Notes under the pieces: model-generated
What the model was told of the DNA's origin: nothing
Seen by the model: only the letters and a program-made list of their open reading frames with translations
The model's database searches: none
Shown here: piece after piece, positions 4,092 through 63,291 of the stretch
How the letters are laid out: every line of letters starts with the position of its first letter
Position numbering within the stretch: the first letter of the stretch is position 1
Assembly (NCBI GenBank): GCA_035084275.1
Contig: CM068756.1
Span: 14,508,001 to 14,572,000, forward strand
DNA: 64,000 bases
Source of the DNA: Hydrolagus colliei
Taxonomy: Eukaryota
Reading direction: 5' to 3'
Made by a program: the position numbers and the translations under genes

Positions 4092-4397
4092 CTTGTACAA
4101 TTAAATGTGACCCAGATCCATGTTTGGTGACTTTCCCCTGACCGGCCAGTGTGCAGACATAGACCCCAGAGTCGTGGAAAGTCACGTTCAGCAGCTGGAG
4201 CGATTTGGAATCAAATATTTTCCGGTTAGTAGGTGTTTGATGCAAGTATTCACCCTCTCCTTCTTTCCACCAGTGAAATGCTCTATCTGAATTTTGTTGA
4301 TCGTTGTCAATCCTGCAACTGAATTTAACGTCTTCACCTCGCAACGCTGTCTGTTTGGCAGGATATTGGATCACGTTCATCGATGCCTCAGCAGGAA
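4092..4397 (-). CDS. Gene A1 VJ-type Ig V exon
   Basis: cag| acceptor 4400-4398, |gtaagt donor 4091-4086, 306 nt, phase 1-1. VPAEASMNVIQYP..KFSC..HWWKEG..DSGVYVC..HGSGSHLIVQ. Confidence 0.92.
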
Positions 4398-4589
4398 CTG
4401 TCAGGGAATGAATTAACCTATAATTAGTGATTATTATTGAAAGGAAAAAGCGCAATTAAATAGACGAGAAGAGGGAGAGAAAGGTGGGAGAACGTTAGAG
4501 GGAAAGAAAGACGGACGTATTCACTACATGTTTTAAAACTGCATGTGTACCGTTTTGTATTTTAACTATAATATAGTAAAATGACAGAC

Positions 4590-4642
4590 CTGTGGCTATA
4601 ATCCCCATTAGAGAAAGACGGGATCACATCACTGGCCAACAT
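4590..4642 (-). pseudogene. Gene A1 leader exon, 53 nt, 2-nt deletion relative to A3 (frameshift)
   Basis: Aligns to the 55-nt A3 leader. ATG at 4642, donor gtctgt. Spliced to V it hits TGA after 3 codons. Confidence 0.7.
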
Positions 4643-8116: not shown

Positions 8117-8937
8117 CATCTCCCGGTGACTTGGACAAACTTCCCGAATACAATTACTATTACTTGTGGCAAATATTTTTGCCACAAGTGTTTGATTAAA
8201 AGATTAGCACATCACATTGAATATCCCCTTCGACTTTACTTGTTATTAATCTATGCACTTCTAAATATGTCTTATTTGACTTGATACTGTGGTTTGGATA
8301 TAAGAATCTCTGATCAGCCTGATTAATGGACATATTGTTATGGACCTTGTTATGTGCAAATTTCTTTCAGGTCAGTTAACAGCGTTGTGGCAGACTGAAC
8401 TGTGATCTCAACAGCAAGAATCATTGACCACATTTCCATTGTGTTGCAATCTCAGCCTAAATTGAAAGCTAGTCACGAGAAGTGATATGATCATTTCCTC
8501 TTTTAAATTAAGAAAACAAATTGCAACACTGAATTGCTCAATACAGTTTAAAAAAATACGTTTAAGTAGAAAAACAACCTCTGTGCTTTAAAAGTAATTC
8601 TCATACAAACATATACTTTTGAACAAAAAAAAATATTATTATTATTATAATAATAAACATCATCACCACCATCATGTTAATCAACAACACAATCACCAAC
8701 ACAATAATATGCCATTCGTGGCAAGTTTCCCTCTGTTTGTCCATCTAGTAAAACCCTACGAGTTAGGGCTTTGGGCTGCAGTGTTAACAGCAGCTGCAAT
8801 GGGAAGAATCCCTGTTTCCGAATGGTCTGAGCCATTCTGGCTGGTCTGTATCAGCAATGCTCTGGAGTCCATCAAAGTATTGTACTTTGGTACCGTCAAA
8901 AAATACCCTAGTATTTCCAATAATACGCTTCCCTCAC

Positions 8938-9231
8938 CTTCTGGAATGACTGTGTAAGTGACCGTCTTGGGTGAATTCTTGAGGGCGGAGTGCGATACCT
9001 TACAGGAATATACGGTCCCAATCGGGACAGGCTGTTTCTCTTCCACAGAGCTGGAAAAATTATAGTCTCCCTCTGGTGTCTTTTGTTTCAGTTCTTTTAC
9101 TGCTGTTAGTTTTTTGTCATTTTTAAAGAACTCCATCTTTAAGTTATCAGGATAAAACCCGGTGGTTGTGCACATATATGTTGGAGAAAGCGACGACCCC
9201 GTGGAGGAAATCTTCAGGTCAGTTGGAGGAG
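8938..9231 (-). CDS. Gene B Ig C1 exon
   Basis: aag| acceptor, |gtgagg donor, 294 nt, phase 1-1. APPTDLKI..YMCTTTGFYP..YSCKVSHSAL..TVTYTV. The canonical C1 Trp is replaced by Phe (MEFFKND). The frame stays open past the donor to TAG at 8758-8756. Confidence 0.9.
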
Positions 9232-12314: not shown

Positions 12315-12623
12315 CAGAGACACGGAGCTCGGAGCCTGTCCCATTGCCAGTGTACTCGCCCTCCACTTTGCAGTAATACATTCCTGCATCGCTCACCCTC
12401 AATCTCTGAAGCTGAAACTCCGCGCTTGCCCTGCTTGCAATGGTGAAGGTATTTCGGGAATCTTTCTTTGCGTCTAAGAAATCACGATCTCCGTCTTTCC
12501 ACCAACGAACCTTAATTGCATTTTGATCGGAAATGAGGGGAAAGACGCAGTAAAACTTGACCGTAGAGCCTTTCTCACTTTGCAGAGAGGGGGGAATTTG
12601 CTTAATCTGGGAATTCTCAACAA
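12315..12623 (-). CDS. Gene B VJ-type Ig V exon (absent from the ORF track)
   Basis: cag| acceptor, |gtgagt donor, 309 nt, phase 1-1. Hand translation: VENSQIKQIPPSLQSEKGSTVKFYCVFPLISDQNAIKVRWWKDGDRDFLDAKKDSRNTFTIASRASAEFQLQRLRVSDAGMYYCKVEGEYTGNGTGSELRVS. Confidence 0.92.
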
Positions 12624-13025: not shown

Positions 13026-13080
13026 CTGTGTAAATCATCCCCAGGATGAATGCCCATCGAACCGAGCTCCTCACAAACAT
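13026..13080 (-). CDS. Gene B leader exon (MFVRSSVRWAFILGMIYT)
   Basis: ATG at 13080, 55 nt, phase-1 donor gtcagt, in frame with the V exon. Confidence 0.78.
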
Positions 13081-13562
13081 GTTAGACAACAGATTTAAAC
13101 GGATTTCTTCGCCAGGACTGGGCAAAGGGCTACCAAGTTATTTTGTGAATGGATTTTTTGCAGTCTTTGCCCTTAATCTGAAACCTACAACACACACACG
13201 CACACACATAAAACGGATGTCACGCTTATGGCCTGCAGTTTCCAACAAAATCGAGGTTTCCTGGCCAAGAAACTACGACCCCGAAGCTCTGAGATCGAGT
13301 TAAAGGATAACAGCTGTGGGTTGTTTATTGAAATGTTCTGTTGATCGACACTTATGCAAACTTATCGGTTCGCTTCTGTGTCAATTCACCGGCAACTTTT
13401 AACGTCATTAAATATATACATACAGTATAGTTTAACACCTTTATTTTATGTTCAGCACTCTGCATCTTTTCAGCACATTTTATTATGGTCATTCAAATCC
13501 CTATTTTATTCGTTTTTTTCACATTGTTTGGAGACCATGGTTTTATTCGTCCCTTTATAAGT

Positions 13563-13862
13563 GGAGTCCTGTGGCTCAGTGTTTGGAGCACTCGCCTCTC
13601 AAGCGAGAGACCTGGGATTGATTCCAGGCAAGTATGAAACTTTGGGGGCAAGTTTCCTTACTCCACACGTGAGAGGAAAAAAAAGCAATAATACATTGCA
13701 CATTTCAACCCTCAGCTGTTTGTGGAACACTGCTGTGGGAAATTAGTTGTCGTGTTTCGCCCACTAATATATAGTCAATTCCCTTTACAGTATATTCTCT
13801 GAAGCGCTTTCAGGCATCTAGAAGATGTGAAACGCACTTTATCAAATACAAGGATTATTGTT
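13563..13862 (+). mobile_element. tRNA-derived SINE with L2-like tail
   Basis: A-box-like GGCTCAGTG head, central ttgtcgtgtttcgccc domain, tail ctgaagcgcttt..gtgaaacgcac..atcaaatacaag. Confidence 0.75.
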
Positions 13863-14157
13863 AGTGAAATGGAAAAAAAAATCAGGTCACTCACATTCAC
13901 GCTTAAATGCCTCATCTCTAAAACACAGTTCTAGCATTGGCGACTGGGATTAAGTGAATATAGGTTAATTTGGATATAATACATTTAACAAGAAAACAAT
14001 TCCCCCATTGAAGCCTCGAGGTGAATCTTGCCATTGAGGTAAATGAAGTGCTGTAGTTCTAACTATAGCGTTCACTTCGTATTTTGTTGTAGCCAAAGTG
14101 AAATGTCAAAACGATTTCTGGTTGTTTCTCATCACTGAAGCTGATGAAGATGATTGT

Positions 14158-18980: not shown

Positions 18981-19091
18981 CTGGGAGTACACAGTCCTCT
19001 CGTCTTGTTTTTTAGGTCTTGGTGTTTTTTTGCAATGTTTCAAATCCACTTTGGCATAAGTCACCAACTCATTCCCTGTTCCCTGCTGTGT
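18981..19091 (-). CDS. A2 tail exon 2 (VTYAKV ITIM; TVYSQ|V)
   Basis: 111 nt, phase 0-0, cag| and |gtatat. Confidence 0.8.
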
Positions 19092-20630: not shown

Positions 20631-21099
20631 TGTGAAGTGCTTTGAGTCATCTAGAAGATGTAAAAAGCGCAATACCAAAATGCTGGGTTTATTATTATTA
20701 ATATCTTTCCATTCGAATAATTCTATTTTCAGGTGAAAAATCTGCTGCAATGAATTCAATAAATTTACCTGATCTTTGCAATGGCCCAATATGTGCTGAT
20801 TTCCGCACCTTAGAAAGAATTTGAAAAAAAATGTGGATATTCACTAAATTTTACATAAATAGTTTCAAATATATTTTGGTTATACTGTACCGAACAAAAA
20901 GCTGTCCAAAGACTAGAAACTCTAAGAGCCTGGTTGTAAAAGGGTAGTTGTCTTCCAACTGCCCTTCTAGTTTGAATGTTTACACATTACAACCTGGATT
21001 AAAGTCACACTAATCACATAGTTCCAGATCCTTAATGTGATTCCCTCAATTGGGGAATTGAATATAAAACCAAAGGGGGTAATGTTAAGATGAAAAATC

Positions 21100-22725: not shown

Positions 22726-22851
22726 CTTTCTTTTTGTTTAATTGGCATTGTTTCCTAATAGTGATGAAAAGGATCAGAAATATCAGCAGGAATGTCAGCC
22801 CTCCACCCACACACCCAGCCATCAGTCCATAGGGAGGCTGAGCGGCACCGT
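22726..22851 (-). CDS. A2 transmembrane exon
   Basis: 126 nt, phase 1-1. DGAAQPPYGLMAGCVGGGLTFLLIFLILFITIRKQCQLNKKK; no charged residue in the TM. Confidence 0.88.
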
Positions 22852-23292: not shown

Positions 23293-23613
23293 CATCCAAT
23301 CCTGAGTTGGGTTTAGAAACCGTGTAACTGGCAACCACTGGATTCCGAAGGGTGACATGAGATGCCAGACAGGTATAAACAACCTCTCTCTCTAAAGGCT
23401 GAGTCTCTTCCATAGAGCTGGAAATGTTGAAAAGTCCATTTGTATTCATTTCTTTCTTTGAATTGATCCCTGTTTTAACTTCATTGCCATCTTTCAGCCA
23501 CGTGAGCGTTAAATCCCCCGGGAAAAAGTCAGTCATTTCACACACAAGAGTCAGAGACTTTGAGGAATTTCCTTCAGGATCTCTGGGGAATATCTTCAGT
23601 GGAGTCGGGGGCA
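23293..23613 (-). CDS. A2 Ig C1 exon
   Basis: 321 nt, phase 1-1. LVCEMTDFFPGDLTLTWLKDG..YTCLASHVTL. Confidence 0.9.
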
Positions 23614-24696: not shown

Positions 24697-25002
24697 CTTG
24701 TACAATTAAATGTGACCCAGATCCATGTTTGGTGACTTTCCCCTGACCGGCCAGTGTGCAGACATAGACCCCAGAGTCGTGGAAAGTCACGTTCAGCAGC
24801 TGGAGCGATTTGGAATCAAATATTTTCCTGTTAGTAGGTGTTTGATGCAAGTATTCACTCTCTCCTTCTTTCCACCAGTGAAATGCTCTATCTGAATTTT
24901 GTTGATCGTTGTCAATCCTGCAACTGAATTTAACGTCTTCACCTCGCAACGCTGTCCGTTTGGTAGGATATTGGATCACGTTCATCGATGCCTCAGCAGC
25001 AA
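24697..25002 (-). CDS. A2 VJ-type V exon
   Basis: 306 nt; 5 substitutions versus the A1 V exon by manual comparison. Confidence 0.92.
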
Positions 25003-26319
25003 CTGTCAGGGAATGAATTAACCTATAATTAGTGATTATTATTGAAAGGAAAAAGCACAATTAAATAGACGAAAAGAGGGAGAGAAAGGTGGGAGAACGT
25101 TAGAGGGAAAGAAAGACGGACGTATTCACTACATGTTTTAAAACTGCATGTGTACCGTTTTGTATTTTAACTATAATATAGTAAAATGACAGACCTGTGG
25201 CTATAATCCCCATTAGAGAAAGACGGGATCACATCACTGGCCAACATTGTGAGCAGTTGTTGAGACTCACAGTGAACCAGTCACTGTGACAAACCTTTGC
25301 TGATTTTGTTGATTTTGCAGTGAGGTTTGACTTCCTGTCCCCGAGATTCAGAGACGGCTCAGTTACTATTGGCAAGGACAGATGTGCCTTTCGATACTAA
25401 GTCGGATCATTCCGTGTATCGGCAGGAGAAAGGGGGGTTTAAACATTGCCGTTGTCTGTGTATCGCATTATTACCTTTCATATAAAACATGTACGATTAT
25501 GAAACGTAACCACCTGTACGTAAATGGGAAATCAATTGACTGTACATTTTGTGGAGGAAATGGGAATAGAAAAGGTCAGTTTGTTGCCAAATAACTATTG
25601 TTATTAAAATGTAAAACACCAGTTTAGGCGACAGAACCCGAGCCACCAGTGATTGAAATCACTATTGTATTGAATTCCCTTCCAATAGTTTATTTAATGC
25701 GATTGAAAACCGTGAATACAAATCTGATGATTTCAGTAACAATACATTATGTGTCAGGATCCAAACCCATTTATTGAACGTTTAACGGTAGATATGACGT
25801 AGCTCAAATATATTTTCACAAAGTCAAATTAATCTTCGTTGTAACTGCGACAACGATGTGCGCAGCTTCGCTCTAAAAACACAAGTAGCTAACGATCTTG
25901 ATGGTCCGCGTGAACTAGAGACAAACTTAAATGATTTTCGAGTGTGCTTTGGGCAATGTTCTTTGCACACAGCAATACTGTATCTCCCATGGTTTTTTTT
26001 TCGTAGAATTTACAGTAACTGACCAGAAAATGAAATCAAACTCTGATTTAGACCCCGGGTGGTCCTGGATGTAAATTAATTTTGATATTGTTGTTAATTG
26101 ATTACATCATGTGCCATAGGGGGTAACACGAGGGAACAAATGGGAGCTGTATTGACAGGAATTTGCACCCATTTTACCCCAGTTTACATCACCATTAGAA
26201 ATCACAAGGTGTATTATTTCATGCCTGAATGATTCTATGAAAGACAAAAGTCACTGTGTGTGATCTGGCTGTGATGGGCTGTAACATGCGAATGTGGATC
26301 ATTTGGTGTATTAGGCGGT

Positions 26320-36258: not shown

Positions 36259-36432
36259 TTACTTGGATCTTGGTTCCCTGGAGATAGCTACTGCTCTTCC
36301 TCCATGGTTTCTCACATGGATCTCTGCATAGTCTATATTCTCAACAGTACGTTTAGGTTTTCCTGTTTTTTTGGAGGAATGTAAATCCAGAGCCGAATAT
36401 GTCAGATTGTTCCCAGCTGCTCTTTGATTGGT
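36259..36432 (-). CDS. A3 terminal tail exon (LTYSAL, IDYAEI)
   Basis: Phase 0. TNQRAAGNNLTYSALDLHSSKKTGKPKRTVENIDYAEIHVRN..SK*. Confidence 0.82.
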   Translation of the reverse strand, partial: TNQRAAGNNLTYSALDLHSSKKTGKPKRTVENIDYAEIHVRNHGGRAVAISREPRSK

Positions 36433-39400
36433 CTGAAAAGACAACATTTGTGAATTTAATTAGATTACTTTGTTTTTCTTCAGTTTACAAAAATTTCCTC
36501 AAATATTTGCCAATTATTATTTGCAGCCAAATTGCTCATTGCTTATTTGATGAAGGCACTGCTCCTCACAGAGCTGCGCTGAACAGAATCTAGTGGTGAA
36601 AATTCTGTTCCATATTGGATTAGCTGTGCATCAACAGTGACAGTAGGCTGGGAAAGGAAAGTGAAAATCAGCCAGGGGAGAAGTTGTTCAAATGATCTGG
36701 ATAGGAATTATTTCCTGTATGTTAAACAATGCCAGATCAGGGAGAGGAAAGATTGGAGGAGAAAGAAAGATGAACTGCAGAAATAGATTTCATGATAAAT
36801 AATGAAGTGAGATCAACTACATAAAATGTAACAAGTAATATTCTGATATATACCTGGGAGTACACAGTCCTCTCGTCTTGTTGTTTAGGTCTTGGTGTTT
36901 TTTTGCAATGTTTCAAATCCACTTTGGCATAAATCACCGACTCATTCCCTGCTCCCTGCAGCGTCTATAAAACAGAATATGATAGATTGTCGGCATTCAC
37001 TGGTCCGGAGAATCCTGTATAAGTATTGATCAAAATGTCTTGAAGGATAAATGTTTTCACCTAAGTTTTAAATATGTTCCTATCATTTTTGTTATCATTG
37101 TGGAGTTCTGTAAATCAGTGGTTGGAATACTTGCCTTGCAAGTGAGAGACCTGAATTTGATTCACCAAGGCAAAATAAATGAATAAAGTGGTCACTTCAG
37201 TCCATGACACTGGTGGACACAATTCGCTGCCGCATTTTGCCCACAAATATATGGTCAATTCACTTTACAATATAACTAGTGAAGCACTTTGAGACGTCCA
37301 GAAGTCGTGAAATACGCTATATCAAATGCAAGGTGGTGGGAGATGAAGAAAGCCGTTCATATTAATTTTTAGTATTAACATTAGCTTATCAAAAGTTTCT
37401 AGGGGCGCACATCTGAAGGCTCACCTAGGGTGCCAAATACCCTTGCGCCAGCCCTGTATATGAGCGATGTCCCAGTGTCTTATAGATTGATACAGATAAT
37501 AACTTGTCTTTCACCAGAAAAATAACTATTTGACTATACAGTGGCAGAATCTCGCCATCAAATCACAACCCAGGACAGTGCCAGAGTATCAGTGTCAGTT
37601 ACGGTGCCAGAGTGCAGATTAGAGAACAAAAAAAGATTAACCACAAAAATGTACAAAATATTTTACAGTAAACACTGAAGTGAGTCCAACAGATTCAAGA
37701 TAATTCAATTGGATAGAAAAGGTTTTTGTTTTGACTCTGTATTTCTGAGAAATACCTGGGCGTACACAGTGCTCTCCTCTTGCCTTTTAGGTTTTGAAAT
37801 TTTCCTTGAACTAGTCAAATTTAATGTGGCATAAGACAATGATGTATTCTCTGCTGCACGCTTTGCCTATAAAACAAAATATGATCACAATAAAAATACA
37901 TTGCATTTCTGTAGCACCTTTCGAGTCTGGATGATGTCTTCAGATGCTGATAGATTATTGGCTCCACGGTTTGTAAATTGTTGTGTAGGTACTATTCAGA
38001 AAGCCCTTAGGAATAAATATTTTCACCAAAGTTTATAATTTTTGATATAAAGCTTTGAAATATTTTACACGGAAAGTTTTATTGAATACTCTGTCTCCAA
38101 GGGCATGAAACTCAATGCCTCATTTTTCAATAATACATTGAGGCCATATGGATGCACAGAGCAAAGCCTTCTTTATTTCTTAATCATTAATAATATGGAC
38201 AATGTGGAGTCCTGTAGCTCAGTGATTAGAGCACTCGCCTCACAAGCGTGAGAGCTGTGTTCGAATCCAGGTAGGTCAGGGTGAATCCTTCAACAAGGTT
38301 TCATACTCCATGCATTATTATGTTAATCATTCGAAAAAAATAATAAAATTGGTCATCTCAATCCCCGACTGTTTGTGAGACAACACTGTGTGCAATTGGC
38401 TGCCGCATTTAGCCCACAAATATACAGTCAATTCACTTTACAATACATGTTCTGAAGCACTTTGAGACATCCAGAAGATGTAAAATCCGCTTTTCTGTAC
38501 TAAAATGCAAGGATTAATATTATTACTATCTTTCCATTTGAATAATTCTGTTTTCAGGTGAATTATCTGCTGAAATGAATTTAATAAATTTACCTGATCT
38601 TCGCAATGGCCCGATATGTTCTGGCTTCTGTGTGACCCTTAAAAACAAATTGAAAAAATAATGTATTCATCAACAACAAAATTACATTTATAGAACGCCT
38701 TTCCCATTGGGAGATGTTCCAAAGCGTCCAATTCACTTTATTTTACATAAATAGTTTCAAATATATATTGGTTATACCCAATAAAAAGCTATTCAAAGAC
38801 CACAAATTCCTGAAACCTGATTCTAAAAATATAGTTGTCTTTCATCACACAACTGCCCTTCTAATTTGAATATATACACAACACAACTGTATTAGAGTCA
38901 CATTAATTACATGATTTCAGCTTCATAATACGACTCCCCACTCACGCCCAACTTTTCTTATTCCTTCTCATACTGTCAACCACTGACCCCAGTTCTCGAA
39001 CTGCCCCTGCTCTGTGGAGCACCATACCTGAAAGCCTCCAATTGCCTGTATCCACAGATCCTTCAAATTGTTGAAGGAATAACTGAGAGAATAGATAATT
39101 TGTGGAATTGGGTATAAAACCAAACGGGTAATGTTAACAAGAAAATTATTTAATTAGACCACAATTAGAATATTGTTTCCAAAAATTCTTTTGCCGACTT
39201 AGGAAGGATGGAAAACATGAATTGGTGCAGATGTTATTCACCAGGACAATACTGGGGAATTTGTTGTGCCCTATGATCAGACACTTTCACTTTGGAACAA
39301 AGAAATTTGAGTGTGACCTGCTAGAGGATTTTAAATTTATGAAAGGTTTTGATGGCATCAATGGAGAATTTATTTATAATGATAGTTGATTCAGTGACAT

Positions 39401-42400
39401 GAAGGCAGTGCCTAAGATTGCTATAAAATGGGAAATGTGGAGGTAAGGATATTTAGTTTTTCTTTTCCTCAACCATCACACTCAACCCGGTATTCCATAT
39501 CCTAACTACTCTGTTAGTGAGGAAGCAATTGATGAGTTGATGACTAGACACTGATATTCTCTAGTTAGGATATGGGATACGCCATTGAGGCAGTAAAAGT
39601 ACGCGAAGAAATACTCTTCTATTCGCATTAATAAAATGAATAGAAGAAGCAATCTAAAACTTTTCAGATGGGGTAACGAGGAAAAGCAGGTAAACTTGGG
39701 ACTGAAAGCATTGCTCTAAAAAACACAAGCACGGCTACAATTGATGGGATGGGTTTCATGAGTGCTGCAAATTTGTATGTTTCTATTAAGTTCTATGTGT
39801 ACCTCTTTGTCTTTAGTTTCAGAGGTCTTCCCGGTCATCACACCAAATTCAAACACAAGGTGTGGGTTTCCAGTGATGCACTAGCCATCATTTGGGGTTT
39901 TCCACAAGCTATGAATAGCTCTATATAAATATGTATTTGTAATGCACTGTGACATGTTTCCCTATTTCCCTATGTTAAATATTTCCTTTACTCCTTTGTT
40001 TCCCTATTATAATAAGAGCAATAATAATCACTATTGGCATGGCAGAGCCTCGTCCCCACCTTCAAGGCCATTCTCAGCCTTGCCCCCGCCTATCTCTCCA
40101 ACCCTATCAGCCCGCCTGTCCCCTCCACTCAGCAGGCTTTGGCATGCTCCATGTCCACCGTCCTAACTGCCCAACCATCATTGGCCAGGCTTTCCGCCTC
40201 GCTGCTCCCACAATGTGGAACTCCATCCCACGATCCCTTCACCTCACTTCCTCTCTTTCCTCCTTCAAGGCCGGTCTCAAGACCTTTCTCTTCGACCGTG
40301 CCTTCTGCTCCCCTCCTAACTCTTCCCCTTCTCCTACTCTCCTTCCCCTTCCCCTTCCCTCAACCCCGACCCTTCCTCCCCTGCTCGGTTCCCGACCTGA
40401 TTGTTCAGCGCTTTGGGACATCCTCCCGACATGAAAGGCGCTCTATAAATGTAAATGTGTTGTTGGTGTAGCATTTGTCCCATCTTCTAGATGTCTCAAA
40501 GAAATTCACAGAATATACTGTGAAGTGAATTGCCTGTACATTTCTGGGTGAAAAGCAGCAGCCAATTGGGAACAGCAATGTCCCACATATGGTCATGGAT
40601 TGAGTGACCAAAAAATGTTTTGTCTCCAGGTTTACTATCCCAGAAATTTGTTCCGCAAATCAACTAACAATCACGGTTAGATTTACTGCATGGTAAACAG
40701 ACACGGGTGGAGTAAGGAAACTGGCTCAACATTTCACCTTGCCGATAATAGAACTCAGGTCTCTTGCTTGTGAGGCACGTGTCCGAACCACTGAGATGCA
40801 AGATTCCACAGAATCAGCACCAATGTTGAAAAGTAGTGAACACTGGTGCACACTTTGAACCTGTGCTCAGGTTAGTGAGGATGCAATTGATAAGTTGATG
40901 ACTATACATATACGGCTCCCAGCCAGAATTGCTCTCTCCCTGCAGCACCCCCCACCCCCCCTCCCGCACCCCAACACCCCACTTTTCCCCGCTCCAAGCT
41001 TGGCAATTGGAAATGAAATGTAAACTTTGTCACAAGTGAATGGGATGTGAATTCTTTAAAGATCGAACAGAGATACTATGGGCTGAACGGCCTTCTATTC
41101 TGTAAGTTTCTTGAGTTCAATCGTAACAGATTTCAGATACTTGTTGCTTGTTGAAATATCTTACTAAACATGCAGCTTAATATATACAAGGTGAGATTCT
41201 TTGAGGACATGTTATCGCATAGTCTCTCATTGTCACCTCTAGTCTATAAAATGAATTATTCTATTAAACATTCACAAATAACGTAAATAAAATAGGAATA
41301 TATCTTACCTTTCCTTTTGTTTAATTTGTAATGGGTCTTAATAATGATCAAAAGCAGCAGAAATATCAGCCCTCCACCTACACATCCAGCAATCAGTCCA
41401 TAGTGAGGCTGAGCGTCAATCTCTACAAGAACAGAATCAACTGAATGTGTTAATAATAATAATAAGATAATAATCGTTGCATTTGATATAGCAGTTTTCC
41501 CATCTTATCGACGTCTCAAAGCACTTCACAGAATATACTGTAAAGTGAATTGACTATATTTGTGGATGGGCGGCGGGGAGAAGGAACGTTTAATAGACTA
41601 TTGTTAGTTGTTGGTTGTTATTGTTTTTATTGTTAATATTGTTGCTTTTGTTGTTTATTGTTCTTGATTTTGTTGTTTATGTTGTTGTTTGATTCCCCCC
41701 CTTGCCCCTTGGTCTTCCCCCCCACCCTCTTCTTCTTCCCTCATTCCCTTCCCCACTTTCTGTTCCCCCTTTTCCCCTTCTCTCCATTTTCCATCTTGCC
41801 CCCCTTTCTCCCTGATTTTGCCCCCCACCCACCTTTCCCTCCCTCTCTCCTTTACCCCACTTTCTCCTCCCTCTTCCTCCCTGACCTTGCTCTACACCAC
41901 CATTCTCTCCCTCCGTCTTCCCCCTTGCCCTCTTTTCCCCCCTTTCTCCCCTGGCCACATTTCTGTGACAGTGGGACACTGCTGTGCGCAATTTGGCTGC
42001 CGCGTTTCACCCACAAGTATACAGTCAATTTTCCTACTCTTCTTTATCCTGCCTCGACCCCTCCTCACCTGCTCTTGTCCCTACCCAACTGTACATCGCC
42101 TTGGACATCCTCTCGACATGAAAGGCGCTATATAAATGTAAGTTGGGATTGATTGATTGCTCGGTTGATTGATTGATTGATTGATTCACTCATTCATTGA
42201 TTGAAACGAGGCAGCCTATTGCACACAGTATATGGATTGAAATGACCAATTTTTATAACTTTTTTTTTGGACAGATTATTATTAGGCGTGTGGAGTAAGG
42301 AAAGTTGCCCAAGGGTTCCACCTTGATCTGCCTGGATTGACTCCAGCAATGAGTTATGCTTTGATCACATCAGATCAGAAATATTAAACCAGATTTTTTT

Positions 42401-44898
42401 TAATTAAAAAGAATTCCTGGCTGAACTGTTGTAGTTGAACTCACTGTTTATCAAAAGTCATCTAGCTGATCAGCGAGACTGAGAGTGGCACCCCTCAGTC
42501 ACCGGGGGCAAAGACAACAGCTAATCTGCACCATATAATGCCACTAAGTGGAGGTTACCAAACGGTGAAAATTTATCACCCAATTTGAAGGGAAGTTTTT
42601 ATCATGTAATAACAACAAAATAGGACAACGATATGCATTTGATATGCATAAGACAAGTAGGCTTCCTACCATCAAATCCTGTGTTGGGTGTAGAAACTCT
42701 GTAACTGGCAACCGCTGGATATTGAAGGCTGACATGAGATACCAAACAGGTATAAACAACCCCACACTCCAAAGGCTGTGTCTCTTCCATATACAGGTAG
42801 CTAGAAACTTCGTAAAGTCCATTTGAATTATTTTCTTTCGTGAAATTCATCACAGTTTTAAGTTCATTGCCATCTTTCAACCACGTGAGCTTTATGTCCT
42901 CCGGAAAAAACGCAGCCGTTTCACACACAAGAGTCAGAGAATTTGCTGAATCTCTTTCAGAATCTCTGCGGAATATCTTCAGCGGGGTCGGGAGGACTGG
43001 AGGACAGAGAATGGAGCAGAATCATGTTGCTGGTGATCAGTTGGAAGATAACGTTTTATGCTCATTTGAATTGTATATTAACTATTTCCTTAAAACATTG
43101 TAGCAAGGAATCTGGATTGTAATAGCAAGAAAATTATTTTGCAATTTTAAAAGTGTTAGTATTTTTTGTGCTGAAAAATGTGTCCTGTTTAGTAGATATA
43201 GTCACTTTGGAGGGGCTAACGAAGGTAGTAGTACATAATCTTAACATTGTGGCTCTGATAAATGATGTTGAACCCTTCTCATCACATGGATTGTTGTGAT
43301 GTTGTGGAATCCAGTCCCACAAGTGGCTTGAGTTGCAGGTAAAGTGGAATACAGTATATAAAGAGAGACAGATCATAGTTGTAAAGGAGTTGACGAGTAG
43401 TGAAGAAATTGGAATAAAAGCTCTGCCACCATCCTAGAGCAACAACAACCCACATTTATACAGTGCTCCTCAAGCAGCATAGTGACCTTAGATTCAGATT
43501 TAAATAGAGATTTCACCATACACAAATAAATAGGTAACAAATCCCCATTCAGACCAAAATTTATTTTCTTCCACTGTATTTCTCTACATTTTATAAAATT
43601 TGAACCAATTTACACAAGTGCTTCAAAATATTGTTGTGCATGAAATGTTCACGTTTTCTAAACAGTTACCTTCTGCCATTCGTATTATCAATAATAATCC
43701 TGGCATTTGATGTAGCATTTTAGATATTATTAAGATATCTCAAATCGTTGCACATATTATACTGTGAAGCGGATTGGTTGTGTTGGGGGCGAAATTTAGA
43801 AAAAAATGTTACTCAATAAATTATAATTTTGTGGACCATGGGTGGAAAATATTAGGATCTCCACAAAGCAATGTAACATAAATAGTCACATAGTAAAAAC
43901 AAAATTTAACTGGGAATTTCATTGGCGAGCACATGGTGAGGAAGAATCTCTCTTCTCTACACTAATACTGTAATACCATAGAATCTTTAATATCCATCTG
44001 AACAAGCAGAAGGGACCTCGGTTTAATGTCTCCCTCAAATAGTAGGAAGCCACTGAGAGCTCCCCCAACATTGCATTGAATTGTAAGCAACGTGGGACAA
44101 CCTGAATCAATGCATAGAATAAAATATCAAATATAGTAAAATTCTAGTGATTGTGGTATGGAGGGATACAAATGTTTGAAAGCAATTATGGAGAATCTCA
44201 ACTTCCCACTTTGTTATGTTTGATAAATTTGTTGGCTCAGATCAGTACAATAACAAAGGGGAAAACCTAATAATTTACTCATATTGATTCCAAAATGCAC
44301 CAGTGATGATTCTATGGTACTAATGTATTCACACTTACCTTGTACAATTAAATGTGATCCAGTTCCATTTATTGCTACTTTCCCCCGATGGATCACTGCA
44401 CAGAAATAGACCCCTGAGTCATGGAAAGTCACATTCAGCAGCTGGAATATTTTGGAATCAAATATTTTCCCGTTATTAGGTTTATTATGCAAGTGTTCAC
44501 TCTCTCCTTCTTTCCACCAGTGAAATGCTGCATCTGAAGTTTGGTGATTACCGTCAATACGGCAAGTAAATTTAACGTCTTCGCCTTGCATTGTTGTCCA
44601 TTTTGGAGGATATTGACTCACTTTCACGGATGAATCAGCAGCAACTGTTAGGAAATGAATTAACCTATAATTAGTGATTATCGAGAGGAAAAAAACGCAA
44701 GAAAACAAATGGAAAGAGGGTGAGAACGGTGGGAGAACATTAGAGGAAAAGAAAGACGGACATATTCACTGTAGACATTTTTAAACACTTTATATCGTTT
44801 TGTATTTTAACTATACTACAGTATATATAGTAAAATGACATACCTGTGGCTACAATCCCCATTAGAGAAAGGTAGGGGATCACATCACTCTCCATCAT
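36259..44898 (-). CDS. Gene A3: intact L-VJ-C1-TM-(ITIM/ITSM)x3 receptor, 413 aa
   Basis: Exons 44844-44898, 44339-44644, 42670-42996, 41309-41422, 38594-38637, 37756-37866, 36854-36964, 36259-36432. All GT-AG and phase-compatible; total 1242 nt, open to TAA. Confidence 0.85.
36854..36964 (-). CDS. A3 tail exon 2 (VIYAKV; TVYSQ|V)
   Basis: 111 nt, phase 0-0. Confidence 0.82.
37756..37866 (-). CDS. A3 tail exon 1 (LSYATL; TVYAQ|V)
   Basis: 111 nt, phase 0-0. Confidence 0.82.
38594..38637 (-). CDS. A3 juxtamembrane linker exon (GSHRSQNISGHCEDQ)
   Basis: taag| and |gtaaat, 44 nt; converts phase 1 to phase 0 as the model requires. Confidence 0.72.
40030..40460 (+). mobile_element. L2-like LINE 3' fragment
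   Basis: [27 protein letters not shown] and the shared 3' end. Confidence 0.8.
41309..41422 (-). CDS. A3 transmembrane exon
   Basis: 114 nt, phase 1-1. EIDAQPHYGLIAGCVGGGLIFLLLLIIIKTHYKLNKRK. Confidence 0.85.
42146..42200. repeat. (GATT)n microsatellite
   Basis: Direct reading. Confidence 0.8.
42670..42996 (-). CDS. A3 Ig C1 exon
   Basis: 327 nt. LVCETAAFFPEDIKLTWLKDG..PLECGVVYTCLVSHVSL; carries one extra Cys. Confidence 0.9.
44339..44644 (-). CDS. A3 VJ-type V exon
   Basis: 306 nt. KFTC..HWWKEG..DSGVYFC..NGTGSHLIVQ. Confidence 0.92.
44844..44898 (-). CDS. A3 leader exon (MMESDVIPYLSLMGIVAT)
   Basis: 55 nt, donor gtatgt, phase 1. Confidence 0.78.
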
Positions 44899-56633: not shown

Positions 56634-56786
56634 CTAGAGATGGCTTCTGCTGCTCCTCTGTAGTTTTTCCGCATGTACTTCTGCATAGTCCGTATTCTCG
56701 TTGCGATTAATTTTCCCTGTTTCCTTGGAACCAGACATATCTAAAGCAGCATAGGTCACGTTGTTACTGGGCGTCCCCTGTTTGGT
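56634..56786 (-). CDS. A4 terminal tail exon (VTYAAL ITIM, TDYAEV ITSM)
   Basis: cag|, phase 0. TKQGTPSNNVTYAALDMSGSKETGKINRNENTDYAEVHAEKLQRSSRSHL*. Confidence 0.8.
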   Translation of the reverse strand, partial: TKQGTPSNNVTYAALDMSGSKETGKINRNENTDYAEVHAEKLQRSSRSHL

Positions 56787-59700
56787 CTGTAAAGCCAATG
56801 TTTCACAATATCATTAGTTGACATTTGGCAAATCTAGTAGCTTAACCAACAGTAGTGTGTCAATTTGTAAGCATTTGTAGGTGTGGAAATAAAGTGGACA
56901 GTTCAAGGAGGTTCACTTTAGATCAATAATCTGTGTGGTCAGCAGTAGACAGGGAAGATGGGATAATTAAATAGCTTTTGTAGAATTTATGTAATCAATG
57001 TGTTAAATATTATCTCAAATTATATTTGGAATGCTTATATATTTGAGACATATGATCGACCTCATATGAGGGGAACTAGTGACTAGTTTCAAAGAAGATC
57101 TTTGCTCAAGGAGGAGAAACAGAAGACTGTTTATGAACAACAAACTCCTTTCATTCCTTATCAGTCATTTCCTTGTGGAAAAATGATCTGCAGCTGGAGA
57201 GAGCAATGTTGCATTTGTTTTCAGAAAGGAACCATCTTTCAAAGAACAATAATTAAGTGAAAGGTCACCTTTTGAACAACATAAATGGAGATCGATTCAA
57301 AAGAGAAAAGAAAGAAATTGCAACTTGAAGTCACAACCCATATGCCAGCTTCTAAAGAATGAATATCAAAATTACCATTTAAGCAACACGAAATGTACAG
57401 TAATAACTATATACTTTTCGATTATATGGAACTGGAAACCGTACAACAATACTTGGATTCCTTTTGAGGACATATTTGGATTTGAATGGGACATTAAATT
57501 AGAGATTGCTTCTCTATCTCTATCTCTATCTCTATCTCATAGCATGTGGTTTGGTCAACTTAAATTGTTGTGAACTATAGTATACATGTGGATACATAAG
57601 CACAATTAGATTTTTAAAAAAATACTTATCACCATATTGATCTGAATTAATAAACCTTGATTAATTGTTCAACATTTGTGTCAGTCCTTACTTCACCGCA
57701 GGGTCATTAAATAGATTAACCCTTACATTTGTCAATTCCTGATTATTCTGCAGGACTGTAATGTATTAGCATTATCAACAGTGACCCGAAAAATTCACGA
57801 TAATGAAGGATTATGAAAGAGCAATATATTATTTGTACACTTCTGCAATAGAAAGTAACCAAAGGGAACAAATTTAAGATAATCACACAAAAAAATTAAC
57901 TGGAGGTTAGAAATATATATTTTTGCCAAGGATGGTTTCGTATATAAATTGCTGCCTCAATGCATAGTGGAAGAAAAGATAAAGAAAAGATCAAGATCAA
58001 AGATCATAAAAGTATTCTTAAATAGAAATGTTTAAGTAGATACATGATGGAACATATCAACGAGTGTGGAGAGTGAGTTGAAAAATATTCAACTTTTTTT
58101 TTGTATGTGGTAAACATTATGTATCACATTCAATGATTAGATTTTCTCATGCCGAGAAAACACAAGGGAAAATTTGACGAAACGATGGATCTGTTTTGGG
58201 GTCACAACATTTTGTGGTGTATGAGTCCCAACATTGCCTACACTGCTGAACTCATCGCCTTACAAGAGGAATGGGCATTTGGATAAATGATGAATGATTG
58301 CTGGACGCTCCCTGCAAAATCGGGGTGGATGTGTGAAAAATGTGAGAAGCAACTAAGAGTGTTTAGGTACAATGGACCCCAACAACGAAGTACGGAAATT
58401 CCATTGAAACTTATCTGTTTTCCTTTGACGAGTAAAATATCCCCAAATCGGTTGGCTGAAAGTGGTTTGTATCTTGTCTTTGTGCTTTAAAAAATCTCTA
58501 CCTGGGCATATACTGTCCTCTCCTCTTGATGCCTGGGTTTTGGAACTTTCTTCGAACTATTTAAATCCAATGTGGCATAAGCCATCCTCTCAGAATCTGC
58601 TTCCATCACAGTCTGTTAAAACAGAAAATCATTTTACATTGTCCAGTACTTTCAATAGGCTGCATCATTTCATTTTGTTCCTACAAACAAACAAAATTAC
58701 ATTTATATAATGGCTATCCTAAACAAGTGGTCGTGTATCCAAACAACAACAACAAAATTACATTGGTATAGCGCCTTTCATGTCAGGAGGACGTCCCAAG
58801 GCGCTAGACAGTTACTGCTTCATCTCCCGCTAACGGTGGGGCCGGTGGGGGGGAACGGGACGTGGAGCAGGCCTGCTGAGTGGAGGGGATGGGCAGGTTG
58901 GTAAGGGGATAGGAGGTCATGGATGTGGGGTGGGGTTCTGGACGATCTGCAGCCTGTGGAGGAAGGAATTGGGAAGGCCGACCAGCAGGCATTTGCCTAA
59001 TCGAGCCGGGATGTAATGAATGCGTGTTTGAGGGTTTCAGCGGCTTTGAGGGTGAGATATTGGCAAAGGTTATTCTTTATGAGGTTAACTGATTTATAAT
59101 TAATTTTACACGTACGTGGAACAATCATTTTAAGTTGTATGATATTTTGCCTCAGAAAGTTCCAATGTGAGCTCCTGCGATGGCTCACTGTCCTCGAGGA
59201 ACACTGTACTTTCTGCCACAACGCCCTCCTGACCCGCCAGTGATCTAACTTTCAACCATTTACCTCGCACTCCAGCAATGCTTTCTGGAATCACAGCCTC
59301 GGCTGCTAGTCCTTTTAAGCATCACAATGTATTTAAAAAGAAACAAAATAGCTAAATATCACCGGTATTTTTACATTTAAAATGGTCTCACTTAATTTGC
59401 TTTAACTGTGTTAACAATCTTACCAGTTCTCCAGGACAGTCCAGTCTATTTGAACCTAAACATGAATATAATTCAAGTAAATCAATTAAATATTTATTAA
59501 CTTTTCATGGCAGTAATATCAAAGGTACACTCAACCAATTTCAAACATAAAGTTGCAACATATAGTCTTATACAGTACGTTTTCTTCTATACACTTACAT
59601 TTGTTCAAGCGCTGTAGTATTTAAGAGTTCCTACATGTTCATCCTGTCTATTAATGCAAGTTATTGTTCTTGTTGTATGGAATTTTAAAAATCCATCCGA

Positions 59701-62700
59701 CTCAACGTTTTCTATCCCACTTTCTGTCGAAGATATTGCCTCTTCAAATCTTTCCTCTCCCAACATTCACCTCGCAAATTCAGCATCCCATGAGAAATAC
59801 ATCTCGTTTGTTTATGCTAATTTTTCAGCTTCCGTGGCTCCTATACGCCCACCCGGACCGTCCGTTCAACAGGACTTGGCCTGCTCCAAGCCCCCCGCCA
59901 GAACCGCCATCGGAGGCCGGGCCTTCAGTTTCTCCACTCCCACCTTATGGAATGCCATCCCTCAATCCCTCCATTTCGCCTCTTCCCTTTCCTCTTTCAA
60001 GGCCGGTTTGAAGACTTTCCTCTTCGATCGTGCCTTTTGTTCCACCCCAAACTCTTTTACCTCCGCTTCGTGTTTCACCCCTTCCCAAACACTCCCCTCC
60101 CAGCTCGGGTCACATGCCTCCTGTTCAGCGCCTTGGGACGTCCTCCCGACGTGAAAGGCGCTCTATAAATGTAAATTGTTGTTGTTGTTGTTGTTATTTG
60201 GGTCTGCTCCCTTCACCGTTTACCAAATATAAACACAGTAATCATCGGGGCCTATTACAAAATTGTGTTCTTCAACTCCTTGTCTCTAGGTGGGGTGAGG
60301 TAATTTTACTCGCCAAATTATACATTTAATAGGAGTAAAACTCAATGATTTCTTACCTTTCCTTTTAATTCTTCTGCATCCAATCACGAACATGATCAAA
60401 ATAACCGATGATACACATGCACCAACTGCATATTTAACAATTAGTAAATAGTTGTTCGAACTTCCATTCCCTACAAGGACAGAATAAACTAGTCATGAAC
60501 CTACACTTGCTACATGAACCTACATGAGCGAGTCACTCATTTTAGAGTCCGTTGCTTATTCTGTAAATCAGAAAGACTAGCTGCTCCAACTCTAATTGCT
60601 CAAACTGTGAAAGGTGATTTCCAGAGCGCATTTTCACACTCCAATCTTTCCCTCGAATGAAACATGAAGCAGGTTTTATATTCCAAAATTTTTGTTTTAC
60701 GTATAATGTTTGCATGACATTAACGGCACATCTATAATTTTCAACCTGGATTAACACAAGAAAATATTCCGTCACAATTTAATATATCATAAAATAATAC
60801 CAAGATTGTTGGTGACCTACCTTTATCAGGAGGTTGAACTGTATAGTTAGCAATCTCCGGATTTTGGAGACTGATGTGAGATACCGAACAGGTGTAAACA
60901 TCCCCGTTCTGGACACGCTGTGTCTTCATGTAACTGTAAGCTTTAAACAATTTCCCGAGATTCTGCTGCTTGACGGTGTTAGTCACTGTTGTCATTTCTG
61001 TGCCATTTCTAAACCAAGTAAAGTTCAGATCCTCCGGGTAAAACTCAGCCGTTTCACACACAAGAGTCAGAAACACAGACTGATTTGTTTCGGGAAACCT
61101 GCGGGAAATCGTCAGTGGAGTTGGGGGAACTGGGGAACAGGTAAGGAGACAAAATCATGTTACTTGAGGGATTGTGAGTCTTTGTAAATCTTTCTGGCTT
61201 TTTTTTAGGGTGGTGGGAGTGTGTGTGGGGGTGGTGAGGGTAGCGGTGGCTATGTGCGCACATTGGCTGCCTCATTCGCCTGCAGATACGGTTAAAACGC
61301 GTTTGGAGACTGTCCAGCACATGATTCTGCACCTTATGAATTGCAGTGACTATTGTTTCCAGTTGACCCCCACCCCCCCCAGTGCGACCACATTGAATTG
61401 AGATTTCACCTGCCGCTTCAGGTGCTTGCTTAAGATCCCATAGCATTTTTGGAAAAGCGAAGAGAGATTTCTCCTCGGGTCCTGGCCAACAATCCCACAG
61501 ATAAACTGGGTCAAGTATGTCGCGAATGGCTATGGAACATTGTTGTTTGCCAATCGGGTAGCGATTTCACATCCAAAAGTTACTGGATTTTTACAGCGAT
61601 TCATGTTGACACGAAAAGCATCAGCATATTATCCAATATATCATTCTACTTCTCATTATTAATGATTGAAATGTGGCAATATCTTCAATAAAATAAATAG
61701 GAGAGAATCAGATACTCACTGAAGGCAATTCAACTACATATCAAAAACATGGGACATTTATCTGGTGGATAAACTCTTAGAGATTGCTAATCAGTAGTGG
61801 GTACCGAATGGTTGCTGCTGGAATAAATAGACTAGTGAGAAGTCCCGTTCCTTCCAGCACTAGAAAATCCACAAATCATTCCTAATTAAATTCTGTGTAT
61901 TTAAGTTAAAAGGGGACGCATGTATATGAAATTATCAGAATACTGCTCCTTGCATTTGATATAGCACTTTTCTTATCTTCTAGATGTCTCATGGTGATTC
62001 ACAGAATATACTGTAAAGTAAATTTACTGTATAGATATGCGTGAAACGTGGCAGCCAATTGCACACAGTAGTGTCCCACAAACAGTCGTGGATTGAAATG
62101 ATGATTTTTTCTCGAGGGATTATTATCAAATGTGTGTGGTAAGGAAACTAGTCCAAAGTTTTCCCCAGCCTGGAATCGAACCTAGGTCTCTCACTTGTAA
62201 GGCGAGTGCTCTAACCACTGAGCTACAGGACAATTAATGCTCAGAGTTGTCAAATCATGAAGCATTATATTATCATAATAATAATTATTGTATTTGATAT
62301 ACAACAACAATAACAAAATTACATTTGTATAACGCCTGTCACATTGGGAGGACATCCCAAGATGCTATATAGTTTTTTCACCTCTTGTGACAGTGTCCCA
62401 CAAACAGTCGTGATTCTTTGACCAATTATTATCATATTTAATAAAATAATGAGAGTGAATTTAGGTGGCTGCCAGTTTGAATTGTGCACAATTCATTTTT
62501 TTTAATTGGATTTTTCAGCGTAATTATATTTCTTTCCTGGGGAGCGCAACATTGCCATAAATTTACAGATAATGAAATTCAAGAACACAACTGTAAATGT
62601 AACGAAAACTATAGAAGAGATTCGTAAAGAATTCTTGTGGGATATTCAAAGATAGGAACAGTTTCAATATCCGTATTAGTCACTTACCGTACACGGTTAA

Positions 62701-63291
62701 ACGCGATCCATTTCCATTCCCTGCTTTTTCCCCCAGTGACCTCACGGCGCAGTAATAGACTCCAGCATCCTGAATATTCACATCCAGGAGCTGGAAGAAG
62801 CCACTTCCTTTGGTTTTAACCCCAAACTGCTTCCTGCTGTCCTCTTCTGTATGTAGGTAGACACTCTCCCCCTCCTTCCACCAGTACACATGGATTCGCA
62901 AAGAGTGTAGAGAGAATGGATAGCTGCAGTAGAAGGTTATGTTTGTTCCTCTGTTTGCCGTCAAATGTTTGGGGAATTGACTTATTTCAACGGATTTATC
63001 GCCAGAAACTATGAAGAATTAAATATTGATGCATGTTAATATTGATAATTGGTTAGGGAAGCAAATAAGTAAAAACAGATAACATACATACAGATGCATT
63101 GAGAGTAAGTCAGTAAATTGTGTTTATTCTGAAACTACTCGGTGATAATAATAATGCTTGGATTTGATATCACGCCTTATCACAGAAAAATATACTGTAA
63201 AGTTTAGTCACAATCTACTTTCACCACTAAATAAACACTTACCCGTGGAAATAATAACCAGAACACACGTGTATAGCAAATAACATCTCAT
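56634..63291 (-). CDS. Gene A4: intact L-VJ-C1-TM-(Tyr motif exon)x2 receptor, 362 aa
   Basis: Exons 63243-63291, 62688-63008, 60821-61129, 60357-60470, 59424-59455, 58502-58612, 56634-56786. All GT-AG and phase-compatible; 1089 nt, open to TAG. Confidence 0.82.
58502..58612 (-). CDS. A4 tail exon 1 (MAYATL; TVYAQ|V)
   Basis: 111 nt, phase 0-0, cag| and |gtagag. Confidence 0.8.
59424..59455 (-). CDS. A4 linker exon (GSNRLDCPGEL)
   Basis: ttag| and |gtaaga, 32 nt, phase 1 to 0; the start resembles the A3 linker GSHRS. Confidence 0.65.
59845..60195 (+). mobile_element. Young L2-like LINE 3' end
   Basis: Near-identical to 28070-28417. Confidence 0.88.
60357..60470 (-). CDS. A4 transmembrane exon
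   Basis: 114 nt. GNGSSNNYLLIVKYAVGACVSSVILIMFVIGCRRIKRK. Confidence 0.85.
60821..61129 (-). CDS. A4 Ig C1 exon
   Basis: 309 nt. LVCETAEFYPEDLNFTWFRNG..YTCSVSHISL. Confidence 0.9.
61950..62230 (-). mobile_element. tRNA-derived SINE (other minus-strand copies at about 21990-22265, 40440-40810, 47335-47570, 49270-49420, 55790-56135)
   Basis: Reverse complement of gtcctgtagctcagtggttagagcactcgccttacaagtgagagacctaggttcgattccagg. Confidence 0.8.
62688..63008 (-). CDS. A4 VJ-type V exon
   Basis: 321 nt. TFYCSYP..VYWWKEG..DAGVYYCAV..GNGNGSRLTVY. Confidence 0.92.
63243..63291 (-). CDS. A4 leader exon (MRCYLLYTCVLVIIST)
   Basis: 49 nt, donor gtaagt, phase 1, hydrophobic. Confidence 0.82.

Follow-up and report, generated by a model that had tools for sequence, protein, structure and literature searches.

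What kind of receptor is encoded by a row of immunoglobulin (Ig)-type genes in a chimaera genome, and is it to be placed with the antigen receptors or with the inhibitory receptors of innate immunity? The question is raised by a window of 64,000 nt of Hydrolagus colliei DNA (contig CM068756.1, positions 14,508,001 to 14,572,000; sequence without any N), in which a first-pass annotation had recognized a tandem cluster of germline-joined, non-rearranging VJ-C1 membrane receptors with tyrosine-motif tails. Our analysis supports this description. Judged from gene models, motifs and homology, the receptors probably form a SIRP-type, SHP-1/2-recruiting inhibitory family with one C1 domain that evolves by gene birth and death.

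A six-frame reading of the window revealed five minus-strand open segments with D[SA]GxYxC, WWK and a J-like GxG[ST]xLxV strand, and four minus-strand segments combining CxxxxF[YF]P with YxCxxxH. By splice-site inspection, all V and C1 segments proved to be exons of phase 1-1 bordered by AG and GT. The remaining exons of g1 to g3 were located by hydrophobicity and motif scans and by tblastn with homologues from Callorhinchus milii (Table 1; the genes, all on the minus strand and head-to-tail, are numbered g1 to g5 in transcription order). The previously given bounds of the cluster proved exact: the V exon of g5 ends at 4092, and the start codon of g1 has its A at 63291. Five same-strand genes with V and J-like strand in a single exon were recovered as described, as was a C1-set exon in four of them. 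The transmembrane exon and two to three tyrosine exons were likewise found in three genes (two, three and three exons, at 56.6–63.3, 36.3–44.9 and 18.4–25.2 kb), although the labels A2 to A4 given to these genes match under no numbering. A complete open reading frame (ORF) with canonical splice sites at all junctions is present only in g1 and g2 (two of the five), which encode intact proteins of 362 and 410 aa in our models. With the acceptor at 36964, which resembles that of C. milii, the g2 product would comprise 413 aa, and cassette 2 starts with TLQGAG as in the C. milii proteins P0003 and P0004; the alternative in-frame acceptor lies at 36955. Exon order in g1 and g2 is that of predicted C. 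milii proteins, e.g. P0001, P0003 and P0004.

The J-like strands read GNGSRLTV, GTGSHLIV, GSGSHLIV (twice) and GTGSELRV, and WWK[ED]G is present in each of the five V exons. The proposal that WWK is a family signature is borne out by 14 sequences, in which W59 and K61 show no variation and W60 almost none; among 13 family V domains the same holds for G96 and L101 (invariant) and for G98 and V103 (nearly invariant). The J strand is without the canonical Phe/Trp before GxG and exhibits N or H in this place (NGNG, NGTG, HGSG), the N being nearly invariant across the receptor family. Pfam assigns the first domain to the V-set, Ig and I-set models and the second domain of g1 to g4 to the C1-set (44.7–72.5 bits at a gathering cut-off of 21; E 2e-11 to 4e-20). 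According to Hatherley et al. (2009), C1-set domains are marked by (F/Y)(F/Y/H)P in the BC loop, by xVxH after the F-strand Cys and by exactly 13 residues between the B-strand Cys and the C-strand Trp (PMC2785349). All of these features were found in g1 (CETAEFYPEDLNFTW, SVSH) and g2 (CETAAFFPEDIKLTW, LVSH). The C1 domain of g3 has the 13 residues, but LASH (xAxH) in place of xVxH, and that of g4 has the 13 residues with Phe for Trp.

An AlphaFold2 model built on a 56-sequence alignment reached a predicted local distance difference test (pLDDT) score above 90 across both ectodomains, with the transmembrane helix at residues 229–263. In a Foldseek comparison with the PDB, all 50 matches listed were Fab-type antibody chains, nearly all of them light chains, aligned over about 215 columns with E around 1e-14 and an identity of only about 20%. 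Since the matches listed are Fab-type chains, the layout of the Ig light chain and the T-cell receptor (TCR), as claimed at first pass for VJ plus C1, can be regarded as real. Shared features are the two-domain V-C1 arrangement, the C1-set hallmarks and the J-like GxGxxLxV; the family differs in its germline fusion of V and J without recombination signal sequences (RSS), in the lack of Phe/Trp before GxG and in its transmembrane segment and tyrosine tail. V and J are contiguous within one ORF. The reported absence of RSS-flanked segments was confirmed, a strict RSS pattern giving 0 sites in the window. A lax scan of the window gave 1 site, scored at two spacer lengths and lying inside a cytoplasmic exon, which is at chance level (mean of 0.6 in shuffled sequences).

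With light chains as the best structural matches, and with some truncated relatives automatically named ‘immunoglobulin lambda-1 light chain-like’, the genes might be taken for germline-joined Ig light-chain clusters or for decayed Ig/TCR genes misread as receptors. The sequences offer neither an FGxG J motif nor RSS for such an origin, the identity to Ig lambda C is only about 30%, and in g1, g2 and dozens of homologues C1 is succeeded by in-frame exons for the transmembrane segment, the linker and the tyrosine cassettes. We consider this interpretation highly improbable and rejected it as contradicted by the gene models with membrane and tail exons.

The cytoplasmic part is modular. Between the transmembrane exon and the first tyrosine exon a linker exon of 32–44 nt is required, because the former ends in phase 1 and exons of the latter kind are phase 0-0; the first-pass exon list, which does not contain it, was thus incomplete. 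The DCPG of the g1 linker is kept in the C. milii protein P0032. Each internal cassette consists of one phase 0-0 exon of 111 nt. In every cassette the first tyrosine lies in a motif of the immunoreceptor tyrosine-based inhibitory motif (ITIM) type (LSYATL, VIYAKV, LTYSAL, VTYAAL; MAYATL of g1 is a non-canonical ITIM), followed by a second tyrosine 22–23 residues on. In terminal cassettes the second tyrosine reads TDYAEV or IDYAEI, in internal cassettes after splicing TVYAQT or TVYSQT. Of the tails with ITIMs and immunoreceptor tyrosine-based switch motifs (ITSMs) announced earlier, the ITIM-type motifs and the terminal ITSM of g1 could be verified. The internal TxYxxV ITSMs turned out to be splice-donor artefacts, read as such because the donor GTA had been translated as valine. 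The transmembrane helix is uncharged.

Among predicted isoforms from C. milii and Heterodontus (P0013, P0039, P0036, P0005), some skip the C1 exon and retain a VJ-transmembrane-tail arrangement. Others of this set skip the transmembrane exon and are possibly soluble, or read through a cassette donor, resulting in TVYTQV and an alternative C-terminus. As the predicted isoforms skip or read through exons, the exon-level modularity may be used in vivo.

Homologues were found throughout the cartilaginous fish. The first homology search returned 31 proteins, all from this group; the top matches were C. milii paralogues on one 18.1-Mb scaffold (52–62% identity), and the species also included Heptranchias, Heterodontus, Scyliorhinus, Chiloscyllium, Mustelus and Mobula. 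Hypanus, Amblyraja and Narcine were added by later searches. A region-restricted search with the g1 V domain gave 15 candidates and 2 matches, and an exhaustive HMMER profile search, which took in 1.84 billion representatives, gave 170 cluster representatives at E<1e-30. The closest relatives of the window genes are C. milii proteins with 52–73% identity, in accordance with the proposed cartilaginous-fish origin, and at the DNA level the window and C. milii share colinear segments of about 70–80% identity. None of the proteins encoded in the window has an identical counterpart in the database. Fourteen full-length members can be aligned end to end, and WWK, GNGTGSxLxV and PPTPLKI hardly vary among them. 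Maximum-likelihood analysis groups g1 with C. milii P0032 (support 100/100, 71% identity), of which by this placement it is the orthologue; g2 and g3 are sisters within a holocephalan-only clade, and g4 forms a long unresolved branch. The flanks of the C. milii P0001 and Heptranchias P0012 genes, up to 10 kb on each side, contain another family member or nothing.

The automatic names of the homologues are mixed: SIRPα-like for most of them, besides SIRPβ1-like, tapasin-related-like, Ig lambda-like, NCR3-like, NCR3LG1-like and CD276. The lesson for annotation is that all these names label one family. Members already exist in public chimaera, shark and ray annotations under SIRPα-like and similar names, and the first-pass interpretation, correct as to architecture, overstated the novelty. 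A literature search, incomplete in its coverage, found no paper describing this receptor family. In P0048 (Amblyraja), P0017 (Chiloscyllium), P0011 and P0002 (C. milii), two near-identical C1 domains or repeated V-C1 units are predicted, which might stem from recent duplication of exons, from fusion of gene models or from assembly collapse, and are not the old d2/d3 pair of SIRPs.

The nearest named relatives outside the cartilaginous fish are SIRPs (one-way best match). While a word-index profile search matched cartilaginous-fish proteins only, the link to SIRPα emerged solely in the exhaustive HMMER search. There, the non-cartilaginous matches spanning C1, transmembrane segment and tail were SIRPα of bat (8e-39) and corvids and a SIRPα-like protein of lungfish. 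In bat SIRPα, profile positions 8–215 align to residues 15–236 (leader, V, d2; 61 bits) and positions 124–361 to residues 251–503 (d3, transmembrane segment, tail; 89 bits), the latter stretch with E 3e-20 against 1.8 billion proteins. The pattern is alike in corvid and lungfish SIRPα; the family profile aligned from the leader in bat and corvid and from C1 to the tail in bat, corvid and lungfish. A tail-only profile scored 40–43 bits on the three SIRPα tails, compared to maxima of 9–11 bits on shuffled sequences (1000 each) and only about 10 bits on the ITIM tails of unrelated reptile multi-V receptors; pairwise BLASTP of tail against SIRPα tail gave 6e-7. Among solved structures, the VJ-C1 query found SIRPα in second place (7e-19) and UrIg2 in third (1e-17). 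The first-pass annotation had mentioned SIRP merely as another holder of C1 domains, a reading that falls short of a match from leader to C-terminus with an order-specific tail.

SIRPα, which combines a V(J-like)-C1 ectodomain and an ITIM tail, was put forward in 2009 as related to the precursor of the antigen receptors (PMC2785349). Like it, the chimaera receptors exhibit an N-terminal V domain with a J-like G strand, a following C1-set domain, an uncharged transmembrane helix and a paired-tyrosine tail. The spacing of the tyrosines matches as well, with 23-14-22 in g1, 23-14-23 in P0001, P0032 and P0012 and 24-17-26 in bat and corvid SIRPα, and the NCBI automatic names point in the same direction. 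Differences concern the two to three one-exon cassettes, the internal second tyrosine (TVYAQT vs xEYAS[IV]) and the organization as a large, fast-turning multigene family in cartilaginous fish. No activating partner with a charged transmembrane segment was seen among the sequences read.

Several observations weigh against a SIRP-type assignment. SIRPs have two C1 domains and the chimaera family one, and the two-C1 predictions from rays and sharks are near-identical internal repeats of the family's own C1. TVYAQT of the internal cassettes is neither a canonical ITIM nor an ITSM. For the g2 C1 domain the top solved-structure match is the Ig lambda constant domain, with UrIg2 and SIRPα matching too; with C1 alone, the Ig lambda constant domain (77 bits) and UrIg2 both score above SIRPα (57 bits). 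V-only searches of solved structures, with a single sequence as well as with a 13-sequence profile, contained no SIRP or NKp30 V domain in the top 60 and were dominated by multi-domain proteins via summed scores (titin, Robo, pIgR, antibodies). Because the SIRP and NKp30 V domains lie outside the top 60, the V domain alone places the family nowhere. Finally, the tail likeness to SIRPα could be convergence from tandem SH2 binding geometry.

The C1 scores in favour of Ig lambda and UrIg2, together with the light-chain-like VJ-C1 layout, would also suit an independent relic of an antigen-receptor precursor like UrIg/UrIg2, with a SIRP-like tail that is convergent or exon-shuffled. A fused VJ exon preceded by a leader exon is indeed the state expected before insertion of the RAG transposon (PMC12227049). 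UrIg/UrIg2 and the chimaera family share the VJ in one exon, followed by C1-set domains, and the confinement to cartilaginous fish. However, UrIg/UrIg2 possess 3 to 11 C domains, lack an ITIM tail and have been reported from elasmobranchs alone, where they are expressed mainly in liver and gill (PMC12227049), whereas the family described here has a single C1 and an inhibitory tail and occurs in holocephalans too. The match to SIRPα over V-C1 as well as the tail and the J strand without Phe/Trp before GxG likewise speak against a relic, and deep relationships within the Ig superfamily are beyond resolution with about 100 sites per domain. We therefore consider such an origin quite unlikely.

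A further candidate is NKp30 (NCR3), the classic lone VJ receptor, of which several genes exist in sharks (Sci Adv 2025; MBE 2023 supplement). The cluster might be shark-type NKp30, i.e. major histocompatibility complex (MHC)-linked, non-rearranging VJ receptors, with a skippable extra C1 exon. Both groups have a non-rearranging VJ domain and are multigenic in sharks, and the C1-less forms of the family, which in relatives are isoforms or separate genes and are present in sharks and rays, show the VJ-stalk-transmembrane layout. These C1-less VJ-transmembrane-tail proteins also account for the NCR3-like automatic names, such as that given by NCBI to C. milii isoform P0013. The main isoform, in contrast, contains C1 (with an exon in g1 to g4) and the SIRPα-like tail, a difference judged from domain layout. 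Genomic position may point the same way: in curated tables, AIF1 and DDAH2 flank shark NCR3 within MHC class III (white shark chr19, sawfish chr34; Veríssimo et al.), whereas catshark family members are found on a 198.8-Mb record, and one of them, LOC119970986, does not appear among the genes tabulated for MHC chromosome 13 of the catshark (one gene, one species). The chimaera family combines an uncharged helix with its SIRPα-like tail. Mammalian NKp30 signals via a charged transmembrane residue. Taken together, identity with NKp30 appears unlikely.

Comparison with further innate VJ receptors was made by description only. NITRs are teleost V or V-I receptors without C1. Like the chimaera genes, they and PRARP, mentioned as a VJ gene from the MHC region in PMC10751288, are innate receptors of VJ or V type encoded in the germline, in some cases with ITIMs. 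The searches also brought up membrane proteins of reptiles (viper and turtles; P0153, P0161, P0116, P0122) in which 3–4 VJ-type domains, all closing with GNGTGTxVTI, follow one another and the tail carries ITIMs (VTYADL…VVYAEV). Annotated automatically under unrelated names (otk, pIgR-like, FcRL5-like, titin-like), they resemble another undescribed non-rearranging VJ receptor family.

A SIRP-type receptor of this build would be a type I membrane protein composed of leader, V domain with J-like strand, C1, uncharged helix, short linker and two to three cassettes. Its V domain may bind a putative ligand, probably on a cell surface, upon which Src-family kinases would phosphorylate the tyrosine pairs of the cassettes. 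Each pair could then recruit SHP-1 or SHP-2 through the tandem SH2 domains of the phosphatase, which once docked would dampen activation of the receptor-bearing cell. The count of cassette exons would fix how many docking units a receptor has, with two in g1 and three in g2. The sequences show exon structure, domain types, the state of each copy, the distribution of the family and its likeness to SIRPα; we infer the inhibitory mechanism from motifs, spacing and homology, and phosphorylation, SHP recruitment, ligand and expressing cell type belong to the inferred part.

The remaining genes are decayed or partial. Compared to g2 and a C. milii gene, the alignment identifies two derived deletions in g3, one of 2 bp (leader exon) and one of 4 bp (linker exon). 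Owing to the former, the first ATG is out of frame with the V exon; owing to the latter, the tail exons are out of frame. A search for rescue of the g3 frameshifts by alternative right-phase acceptors or exons found none. An internal ATG was rejected as start, since it gives a leader exon of 6 residues only (MGIIAT), judged too short for a signal peptide. In addition, the first ITIM of g3 is altered to LSYAPL, and the donor of that exon is CAC|GT. For g4, homology, hydrophobicity and motif searches in the 4.3 kb up to g5 gave no transmembrane or tyrosine exon; the stretch 8604–8744 was tried as a membrane/tail exon and rejected as AT-rich low-complexity sequence. The C1 exon of g5 lies just past the window start, positions 1–285 being the intron directly upstream of it.

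Over 2.3 kb, g3 and g5 are 97% identical and have one frameshift in common. The ratio of nonsynonymous to synonymous substitution rates (dN/dS) is about 1 for this pair, 0.65 (V) and 0.80 (C1) for g2 vs g3, in which both domains are 67% identical, and about 0.4 for g1 vs g2. From the gene models and the dN/dS values, we read two genes of the cluster as apparently working, two as probable pseudogenes and one as a truncated or secreted form. The best reading of the tandem array is evolution by gene birth and death, i.e. duplication and loss. The earlier designation as a ‘diversified family’ is weak, given that the divergence between g2 and g3 is the same in V as in C1 and that two or three copies are in decay.

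Apart from the receptor family genes, the window contains only transposons. The long interspersed nuclear element (LINE) with an intact ORF in the V-C1 intron of g5 could be recently active; decayed copies were found at 45876–46802 (+), 20300–20533 (+) and 29543–29839 (-). A second retroelement family is represented by a 404-aa fragment matching RVT_1 at 33637–34851 (+). Between the receptor genes its 3′ part is repeated five times or more, and it is also present near the C. milii homologue; tails of this element lie at 27797–28381 (+), 40034–40471 (+), 59654–60154 (+) and 50186–50554 (-). A repeat of ~320 bp, in size and copy number similar to a short interspersed nuclear element (SINE), is common to the window (14154–14472, 13561–13863, 19212–19538, 38203–38529) and the C. 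milii locus L001 (1307–1625, 14256–14574, 19551–19876, 27077–27399) with 75–83% identity and could mark holocephalan genomes. Two C-rich low-complexity tracts with strong strand skew (28600–29450 and 41658–42152; GC skew down to -0.42) give long pseudo-ORFs rich in proline and serine in several frames and are probably simple-repeat DNA, not genes.

Table 1. Receptor genes, their exons and the intronic retroelement in the 64,000-nt window (positions counted from its first base).
Feature	Position	Strand	Description and evidence
g1	63291 to 56634	(-)	leader, VJ, C1, transmembrane, linker, 2 tyrosine exons
g1 leader exon	63243..63291	(-)	MRCYLLYTCVLVIIST, phase-1 donor; ATG-plus-donor scan; joins in frame
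g1 VJ exon	62688..63008	(-)	V-set ending GNGNGSRLTVY; Pfam V-set, Ig_3; pLDDT above 90
g1 C1-set exon	60821..61129	(-)	Pfam C1-set 3e-17; CETAEFYP, 13 residues Cys to Trp, SVSH
g1 transmembrane exon	60357..60470	(-)	hydrophobicity scan and splice sites; modelled helix residues 229-263
g1 linker exon	59424..59455	(-)	32 nt, phase 1 to 0, SNRLDCPGEL; sole candidate in the right phase
g1 tyrosine cassette 1	58502..58612	(-)	111 nt, phase 0-0; MAYATL, then TVYAQ 23 residues on
g1 terminal cassette and stop	56634..56786	(-)	VTYAAL ITIM, then TDYAEV ITSM 22 residues on
g2	44898 to 36259	(-)	leader, VJ, C1, transmembrane, linker, 3 tyrosine exons
g2 leader exon	44844..44898	(-)	MMESDVIPYLSLMGIVAT; tblastn with C. 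milii P0001
g2 VJ exon	44339..44644	(-)	motifs, splice borders, Pfam
g2 C1-set exon	42670..42996	(-)	Pfam C1-set 4e-20
g2 transmembrane exon	41309..41422	(-)	hydrophobicity scan, splice sites
g2 linker exon	38594..38637	(-)	44 nt; SHRSQNISGHCEDQ; tblastn with P0004
g2 tyrosine cassette 1	37756..37866	(-)	111 nt; LSYATL, then TVYAQ 23 residues on
g2 tyrosine cassette 2	36854..36964	(-)	111 nt; VIYAKV, then TVYSQ 23 residues on
g2 terminal cassette and stop	36259..36432	(-)	LTYSAL, then IDYAEI 23 residues on
g3	25247 to 18352	(-)	leader, VJ, C1, transmembrane, linker, 3 tyrosine exons
g3 leader exon	25195..25247	(-)	derived 2-bp deletion
g3 VJ exon	24697..25002	(-)	open
g3 C1-set exon	23293..23613	(-)	open
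g3 transmembrane exon	22726..22851	(-)	hydrophobicity scan, splice sites
g3 linker exon	20769..20808	(-)	40 nt, derived 4-bp deletion
g3 three tyrosine cassette exons	19923-20033, 18981-19091, 18352-18525	(-)	open, unreachable in frame
g4	13080 to 8938	(-)	candidate leader, VJ, C1
g4 candidate leader exon	13026..13080	(-)	sole candidate, pattern evidence alone
g4 VJ exon	12315..12623	(-)	divergent lineage; closest match Heterodontus P0020, 49%
g4 C1-set exon	8938..9231	(-)	C-strand Trp replaced by Phe
g5	starts 4642, runs past window start	(-)	leader, VJ inside window
g5 leader exon	4590..4642	(-)	2-bp deletion identical to that of g3
g5 VJ exon	4092..4397	(-)	5 nucleotide differences from g3
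LINE ORF	309..3209	(+)	uninterrupted, 966 aa, AP-endonuclease and reverse-transcriptase domains; in g5 V-C1 intron, not part of the receptor

No SIRP genes were known in organisms predating adaptive immunity, according to Hatherley et al. (PMC2785349). A SIRP-type family in chimaeras, sharks and rays would place this receptor design at or before the split of cartilaginous and bony fish, with the single-C1 chimaera family as a simpler form of it. A further-reaching possibility, which we regard as rather improbable, is that the family represents, in cartilaginous fish, the lineage from which SIRPs also arose and keeps its minimal ancestral unit of one VJ exon, one C1 exon and an inhibitory tail. 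If this were true, an inhibitory SHP-coupled VJ-C1 receptor would already have been present in the common ancestor of jawed vertebrates, and the view that non-rearranging relics survived only in elasmobranchs would be challenged. The one-exon, phase 0-0 docking cassettes illustrate how duplication or skipping of exons can adjust the strength with which a tail inhibits. For the comparative immunology of cartilaginous fish, the family offers a candidate set of inhibitory receptors beside the NCR3 genes already described.

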